64,000 nt of DNA from positions 8,060,001-8,124,000 of the forward strand of contig NC_043014.1 in the NCBI RefSeq assembly GCF_006345805.1, read 5' to 3'. The notes under the pieces were generated by a model that saw only the letters and a list, made by a program, of their open reading frames with translations, was not told the origin of the DNA and did no database searches. The position numbers were made by a program, and so were the translations under genes. This DNA is from Octopus sinensis. Its lineage: Eukaryota. Shown here piece after piece: positions 12,800 to 57,093 of the stretch (the stretch's first letter is position 1; the number at the start of each line of letters is the position of its first letter).

Positions 12800-13142
12800 T
12801 TATTTTGTTACGCTTATCATATCATATAATTCATGTACTCTGATTTCCATGTCAGTAATTTCTCCCTGCCTCAAAAAGTATTGCATTAGCTGGTCGTATC
12901 TCATTATATCAGCCAGTTTTTCGATGTTGTCAGGTGTGATCATTTCTCCCGGGCAACTTTGTATCTTAAATGGATCTCCTTCGCAAGGACATAAATCTGG
13001 TTTTGTTGACTGGCATGTACGGTACTCTATTTTAATTTTGTCACACTGAGAGAAAGATCCTTGAAAAGGAGTCCATACATTACTGACTCCGGTATACGTA
13101 CAAAAATCTATTTGCGTTATACTAGAGCAACTGACTTCGGGC
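12800..13142 (-). CDS. Exon 14 (terminal): end of peroxidase domain, TSP1-like module and tail
   Basis: ctttctag acceptor, phase 2. Reads [14 protein letters not shown]...[11 protein letters not shown]...YRTC...CPCEG...SC...SVTK*. Confidence 0.93.

Positions 13143-57093: not shown

Follow-up and report, generated by a model that had tools for sequence, protein, structure and literature searches.

The peroxidase-like gene on the minus strand of the Octopus sinensis DNA analysed here (64,000 nucleotides, positions 8,060,001 to 8,124,000 of contig NC_043014.1 in assembly GCF_006345805.1; this whole stretch is hereafter the window) is probably, at a rough probability of 0.65, the O. sinensis representative of an animal heme-peroxidase family member that is non-catalytic ('pseudo'), old and specific to octopods. 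A sequence-only reading had taken it for a heme-less secreted protein, not a product of simple decay, and had implied that the case was singular. The first part stands for the lineage; the copy in the window has a broken reading frame, and the case is less singular, since the gene belongs to an entire octopod clade, and peroxidase folds without heme (DUOX PHD, PXDNL) were already known. For the product itself we infer secretion, absence of heme and a structural, adhesive or ligand-binding role.

Gene structure and predicted fold

The rebuilt gene has 14 exons running from an ATG at 57093 to a stop at 12800, with GT-AG at every intron, so that the gene coordinates, exon count and canonical splice sites read earlier from the sequence were recovered. 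From the Met at 42482 in exon 5 to the end of exon 14, ten exons correspond letter for letter to the 553-aa RefSeq protein P0001, the product of this locus, named 'chorion peroxidase-like', and the 14-exon layout of paralog P1 is identical. Comparison with paralogs P1 and P2 provided three 5' exons, namely an ATGAG first exon, a signal-peptide exon and a 16-nt micro-exon, followed by the exon encoding NGRCNN. The coding part of exon 1 (57089..57093) is the start codon plus two bases, with 5' UTR upstream roughly to 57156; its ATGAG/GTAAGG lies at the same relative place in P1, and the region is conserved in P1 and O. vulgaris. Exon 2 (52178..52224) encodes the signal peptide (16 residues after the initial Met; mean hydropathy 2.98 over residues 3-16), can be aligned to the signal exons of P1 and P2, with which it has its acceptor and donor in common. 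Exon 3 (50736..50751), the micro-exon, reads G-CLVN-S and is the homologue of a P1 micro-exon that is required by RefSeq protein P0003. An objection that the start at 57093 lies in a SINE tail, with exon 2 lacking a start codon and out of phase with exon 4, was rejected because the ATGAG exon and the 16-nt micro-exon found by this comparison restore the frame.

The peroxidase domain begins in exon 4 (45916..46063), which carries NGRCNN and a 1-nt deletion. It continues through exon 5 (42350..42529), with the distal-side helix and the RefSeq start Met; exon 6 (41724..41742), a 19-nt micro-exon (ADVCCD) that matches P0001 exactly; exon 7 (41081..41193) and exon 9 (31444..31500), both placed by mapping P0001; exon 8 (37721..37816), with the Ca2+-binding loop; exon 10 (29452..29896) and exon 11 (27996..28190), with further active-site motifs; exon 12 (24934..25094), with the conserved GDRYYYE motif at 24956-24976; and exon 13 (16870..16969), where a 17-residue segment ends the domain. 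Exon 14 (12800..13142) encodes a Cys-rich tail with a probable degenerate thrombospondin type-1 repeat (~13013-13078) and ends in TAA at 12802-12800; AlphaFold2 predicts three helices after this Cys-rich stretch. A tblastn search with a canonical O. sinensis peroxidase ORF as query matched no more than three exons, the divergence between the gene and that query being too great, and tblastx comparisons with the paralog loci were depth-filtered, since raw matches were dominated by SINE and LINE repeats.

Both profile and fold place the product by descent in the animal heme-peroxidase family. Pfam An_peroxidase (PF03098) scores 221 bits against a cut-off of 25 and covers profile positions 4-530 of 530, a family match far beyond chance. 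AlphaFold2 modelling of P0001 with the family alignment gave a confident prediction (pLDDT 94.4, pTM 0.92) that Foldseek superimposes on lactoperoxidase and myeloperoxidase (MPO) with TM 0.73 and rmsd 3.5 Å, and that also matches the heme-free DUOX1 PHD; the peroxidase fold is thus predicted to be kept, as had been proposed. In the full-length model the 18-residue N-terminus is a typical signal peptide, no further hydrophobic segment follows, and there are eight N-glycosylation sequons and 21 Cys, with a mature pI of 4.9. All but one of these Cys (20/21) are common to P1, and 17-18 to the Argonauta genes. The earlier description of the protein as secreted accordingly has the leader of the full-length model in its favour; against it, the window copy is frame-broken and the RefSeq model has no signal peptide. 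Pfam found no TSP_1 match in the octopus tail, the aligned tail of a mussel relative (P0034) scoring 21.8 bits against a cut-off of 21.6, and RGD, KGD and LDV motifs were sought in the protein and are absent.

The introns and flanks are rich in repeats, with ~63% of the gene span repeated elsewhere in the paralog cluster. Debris of non-LTR retrotransposons on the gene's strand lies in introns 8 and 4 (33120-37374 and 44613-45080, both minus strand) and includes a reverse-transcriptase ORF (RVT_1, 103 bits), a tandemly duplicated block with two zf-RVT ORFs, and another reverse-transcriptase fragment, which has a YMDD motif; it is in the block at 33-38 kb that the window becomes G+C-rich (0.44-0.51). 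A SINE-like repeat is very abundant (for example at 63794-63994, 1357-1541, 56543-57038 and 38394-39078), occurring dozens of times across the window and the loci of the paralogs, and one of its frames translates into at least 61 residues. Long, very A+T-rich simple-sequence tracts with trinucleotide-type runs occupy 44040-44650 (intron 4) and 53330-54190 (intron 1) and give poly-I/N/Y/L ORFs in all frames.

Heme-site residues and the octopod clade

Residues were mapped by phmmer against all PDB chains (myeloperoxidase 12cl_A, lactoperoxidase 2ikc_A and eosinophil peroxidase) and by an 84-sequence family alignment. The four peptides on which the sequence-only reading was built were all found on the minus strand where it had placed them: FGKLLMFD (42378-42401), GDTISE (29877-29894), YELVVAS (29598-29618) and a ten-residue peptide at 28109-28138. 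Together, HMMER and the family alignment give the following substitutions. In MPO numbering, Q91 on the distal side is K, the heme ester partner D94 is M and the distal H95 is F; the distal R239 is lost from GD-T-ISE; and, on the proximal side, N421, which is hydrogen-bonded to the proximal His, is V and the conserved R424 is D. The axial, proximal H336 corresponds to Ala in the family alignment and to a gap in the pairwise HMMER match, and no His occurs within ten residues of the site, the nearest being 11 residues upstream. Alignment to MPO, lactoperoxidase and the family therefore places His at neither the distal nor the proximal position. Ordinary family members keep H95 in 47/66, H336 in 56/66, N421 in 45/66 and R424 in 63/66 sequences.

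The proposal that almost the whole heme and catalytic apparatus had been replaced is right for the heme ligands and the distal His and Arg, and needs a minor correction: the second ester partner, E242, is kept, as is the whole structural Ca2+ site, with all four side-chain ligands conserved (D96, and T168, D172 and S174 in the loop THVIDAS at 37770-37790). The catalytic set is lost at H336, at H95/R239, at N421/R424 and in one half of the ester pair. Because the axial His, the distal His and Arg, Asn421/Arg424 and Asp94 are absent, the protein, as predicted from these positions, cannot ligate heme iron canonically and cannot split H2O2.

The window gene belongs to a cluster of four tandem paralogs within 230 kb on C18, the chromosome contig of the window, a fifth being on the unplaced contig C2610. 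P1 (~7.95-7.98 Mb) and P2 (~8.04-8.064 Mb) are on the plus strand, and P3 (~8.15-8.18 Mb, L021-L026), on the minus strand, is directly upstream of the window gene and on the same strand. The last two exons of P2, 13 and 14 (the latter with the stop), are inside the window at 1852-1951 and 3527-3871 on the plus strand, and P2 and the window gene stand tail to tail, ~9 kb apart. P2 is also a His-less peroxidase-like gene (FGTLLKFD, ALASMS); its O. vulgaris model (P0009) has a wrong 3' end and misses the last exon. The fifth paralog, again His-less, occupies 7959-12769 of the 13.5-kb C2610 and is 'eosinophil peroxidase-like, partial' in RefSeq (P0024). Its orthologs are O. bimaculoides 'myeloperoxidase' P0011 and O. 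vulgaris P0026, and it probably belongs to the chromosome of the cluster, like its O. vulgaris ortholog. No O. bimaculoides ortholog of the window gene was recognised in the tree.

P3 (O. sinensis 'chorion peroxidase-like' X1/X2; X1 is XP_029647656, P0170) shares the array and stands nearest to the His-less clade as its outgroup. It differs from the window gene in keeping H95, R239, E242 and H336, in the motifs FGLFLMHD (distal His), GDDRINEH (distal Arg and Glu) and AVHSML (proximal His); N421 and R424 are already lost. From these residues P3 may still bind heme, and it looks like a halfway stage from an active peroxidase to the His-less clade. In its Argonauta relative P0025, Tyr occupies the proximal site.

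In the trees, P3 and an Argonauta gene are sister to the His-less clade (100/99), all members of which lack both His, and the window gene groups with four Argonauta hians genes (100/97). Because Argonauta genes fall inside the His-less clade, loss of the ligands is older than the Octopus/Argonauta split, and the window gene's own lineage is equally old. Within the clade the substituted positions are fairly conserved: position 95 is F or A, and every member has D at 424. Among 1.84 billion representative proteins searched, close matches formed just seven clusters, from Octopus or Argonauta alone, and beyond them identity was ≤30%. Two full-length transcripts in Logan contigs L031 and L032 (runs SRR27666058 and SRR27666079) encode P0031 and P0027, whose branches fall immediately outside the octopod group; both have the TSR-like tail, the distal His, and Asp or Ala at the proximal-His position. 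On this evidence the proximal ligand was apparently lost on more than one occasion in the subfamily.

The nearest catalytic-looking relatives are canonical mollusc peroxidases with a C-terminal TSP1 repeat, of the type of Sinanodonta woodiana KAL3886204 (P0034). Like the octopus protein, P0034 has a signal, An_peroxidase and then a WxxW...C...RxRxC tail; it differs in keeping Q91, H95, R239, H336, N421 and R424, and the two are 27% identical. Peroxinectin, chorion peroxidase and MLT-7 are secreted invertebrate members of the same Pfam family that act as active heme enzymes in tyrosine cross-linking, peroxinectin also bearing an integrin-binding KGD/RGD motif. The octopus protein, lacking both the catalytic residues and any such motif (LDV included), does not qualify as a peroxinectin.

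The exon 4 deletion and alternative readings

The one indel that had been noted in the gene is a single missing G in exon 4, between window positions 45974 and 45973, where O. sinensis has GTGAA and O. vulgaris GTGGAA. As assembled, the frame is broken after codon 53 and a TGA (45933-45931) is reached at codon 67, while the O. vulgaris exon 4, of 149 nt, reads through. The RefSeq model, starting at an internal Met, leaves out ~45 residues at the start of the domain. The assembly was searched for another exon 4 by which to judge the frameshift and contains a single copy only. The missing G reflects a fault of the assembly, a polymorphism or inactivation of very recent date; single-base indels are a common artefact of long-read assemblies, and the lesion may be such an error and would at most be very recent.

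In O. vulgaris the locus (L027) has all 14 exons at 99-100% identity, with an intact 1926-nt ORF of 641 codons and 26/26 splice sites. The two species differ by five substitutions, three synonymous and two nonsynonymous (omega 0.17, binomial p = 0.064), too few to decide. Exon divergence (0.26%) and unique-intron divergence (0.49%) are not significantly different (p = 0.21); a much stronger contrast with all introns (p = 3e-5) was discarded, as repeats and microsatellites drive it, the A+T-rich tracts being a main source of the inflated intron value. Against P1, dN/dS is 0.44, fairly relaxed, at dS 0.83, and in neutral simulations the frame stayed open in 2% of runs at 5% change per site and in none at 10% or more. 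For the dN/dS check across octopod orthologs proposed beforehand, the O. vulgaris comparison has too few changes; that with the paralog P1 is informative. To judge from dN/dS and dS to P1, the Cys shared with it and the loss of frame in the simulations, the lineage appears to be under purifying selection through essentially all its history. Simple decay is excluded for the lineage, as far as these sequence comparisons go, because the O. vulgaris ortholog is intact, the gene groups with Argonauta genes, and the simulated frame does not survive divergence of the kind separating it from P1. The argument made earlier against simple decay consequently applies to the lineage and stops short of the window copy, whose frame ends at codon 67. 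Nor does that copy resemble a long-dead or processed pseudogene, its splice sites being intact and its ortholog too, with one 1-nt deletion and omega 0.44 to P1.

A more limited form of decay is a possible but on balance unlikely alternative, in which the O. sinensis gene became a pseudogene very recently, or is a null allele still segregating; no full-length protein would be made, and decay would be at its outset. The frameshift and the codon-67 stop in the assembly speak for it, as do the truncated RefSeq model and the lack of a significant difference between exon and unique-intron divergence from O. vulgaris. So does the search for transcript-derived proteins: none of the gene or its paralogs was found in a collection of 5.8 billion proteins, in which relatives from other species do occur as transcript assemblies, and no transcript-derived fragment came up when the N-terminal 227 aa served as query. 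It is opposed by the deletion being the sole lesion across 1925 coding bases and 26 splice sites, by the three synonymous and two nonsynonymous changes against O. vulgaris, by the frequency of artefactual long-read indels and by the intact O. vulgaris ortholog.

Comparison with known systems bears on whether an intact product could still be a heme protein through non-canonical ligands, or another enzyme using a cofactor or substrate in the pocket. In human DUOX1 PHD the heme-ligand His is missing and there is no heme density, and the homologous cation site is kept, its mutation preventing assembly (PMC7794343). The DUOX1/2 PHD shares with the octopus protein the fold found by Foldseek, the loss of the heme-ligand His and a cation site that corresponds to the Ca2+ site of MPO; this domain lies outside the cell, has no catalytic role, binds no heme and needs the cation site for folding (PMC7794343). 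It differs in forming the N-terminal part of a large NADPH oxidase of the membrane, whereas the octopus product is predicted to be stand-alone and soluble, with a signal peptide and a TSR-like tail and no transmembrane or NOX part; the losses are independent. PXDNL, which has additional LRR, Ig and vWC domains, is likewise an animal heme-peroxidase family member with conserved active-site residues replaced. It has no measurable peroxidase activity, residues matching peroxidasin Gln823 and Asp826 being replaced (Q to W, D to E), and this double change alone abolishes peroxidasin activity (PMC8533639). Far more has been lost in the octopus clade (both His, Arg239, Asn421 and Arg424), and the architecture is different. 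With the fold retained, the ligands lost and the gene kept over the long term, the octopus proteins fall in the same class of heme-less pseudoenzymes, and by analogy would resemble DUOX PHD and PXDNL in mode while being stand-alone, secreted and encoded in a lineage-specific tandem array.

A non-canonical heme ligand stays conceivable from the sequence, given E242, and the retained Ca2+ site, the very high confidence of the predicted fold and the conservation of the substituted positions (F/A at 95, D at 424) are all compatible with some pocket function; hPMR1, reported as an endonuclease isoform of PXDNL (PMC4937341), offers a precedent for a non-peroxidase enzymatic role in the family. We nevertheless consider a heme protein or other enzyme improbable, as none of the two His, the distal Arg, Asn421, Arg424, Gln91 and Asp94 survives, the His nearest the proximal site is 11 residues from it, a comparable loss in human DUOX1 PHD leaves that domain free of heme, and there is no sign of a new catalytic set.

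The O. vulgaris annotation P0002 (875 aa; L027, OX597833.1, gene 10001-109884) fuses the P3 ortholog to the ortholog of the window gene, reading exon 2 in another frame, skipping exons 3, 5 and 12, truncating exon 11 and misreading exon 14. As the plain intact ORF sits in the same DNA, we read P0002 as a mis-model or a minor read-through RNA; if it is based on transcripts, it hints at an irregular read-through RNA. That the window gene is only the downstream half of such a P3 transcript, encoding a two-domain protein and not expressed alone, is very improbable: P0002 does join the P3 ortholog to exons 2-14 of this gene, the alternative frame of exon 2 is open and joins exon 4 in frame, and P3 is the next gene upstream, but the window gene has its own conserved ATG exon and signal-peptide exon arranged as in P1 and P2, the fusion must forgo the distal helix of exon 5, and RefSeq keeps P3 separate at 636 aa.

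A predicted secreted binding protein and its significance

In the reading that we prefer, of an old non-catalytic octopod family member, the full-length 641-aa product, intact in O. vulgaris, would enter the secretory pathway through its signal peptide and adopt a Ca2+-stabilised, disulfide-rich, glycosylated, all-helical peroxidase fold. It would most likely act by binding and not by catalysis, with the fold itself, the putative degenerate thrombospondin-type repeat at the C-terminus and the helical tail as candidate binding surfaces. The gene would have originated by tandem duplication of a canonical mollusc 'peroxidase + TSR' gene, the ligands being lost before Octopus and Argonauta diverged, with the neighbour P3 still carrying both histidines.

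Literature on the octopod cluster, and on 'mlt-7' with octopus, was searched and nothing relevant was found; a paper on the Argonauta eggcase mentions peroxidases generically only. Two candidate links to published data were set aside as irrelevant to the gene because their primers or peptide do not match: the O. maya oviducal-gland 'chorion peroxidase' (PMC8976471), whose primers do not match the cluster, and the ink-proteome peptide QWCGLSFPR (PMC10142993), absent, by eye, from the rebuilt protein. The names in use for these genes, 'chorion peroxidase-like', 'peroxidase mlt-7-like' and 'myeloperoxidase', are misleading where octopus transcriptomes or proteomes are read for oxidative cross-linking or melanin chemistry.

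For peroxidase specialists this is a further pseudo-peroxidase and no new principle. Should the family be expressed and its products truly heme-free, it would show cleanly, in nature, how a large enzyme fold can be put to non-catalytic use outside the cell, and with the P3 intermediate next door the order of residue losses can be read from living genes. More tentatively, and doubtful in its full form, octopods may have turned a heme peroxidase into a secreted, Ca2+-stabilised, heme-free binding family (at least five Octopus and at least four Argonauta genes) whose emptied heme pocket or TSR-derived tail recognises a ligand, or a partner in the matrix, of some structure peculiar to octopods, for instance the egg envelope, a sucker or skin secretion or the Argonauta eggcase. 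Were this so, the family would represent lineage-specific neofunctionalisation of the fold, beyond mere loss of activity.
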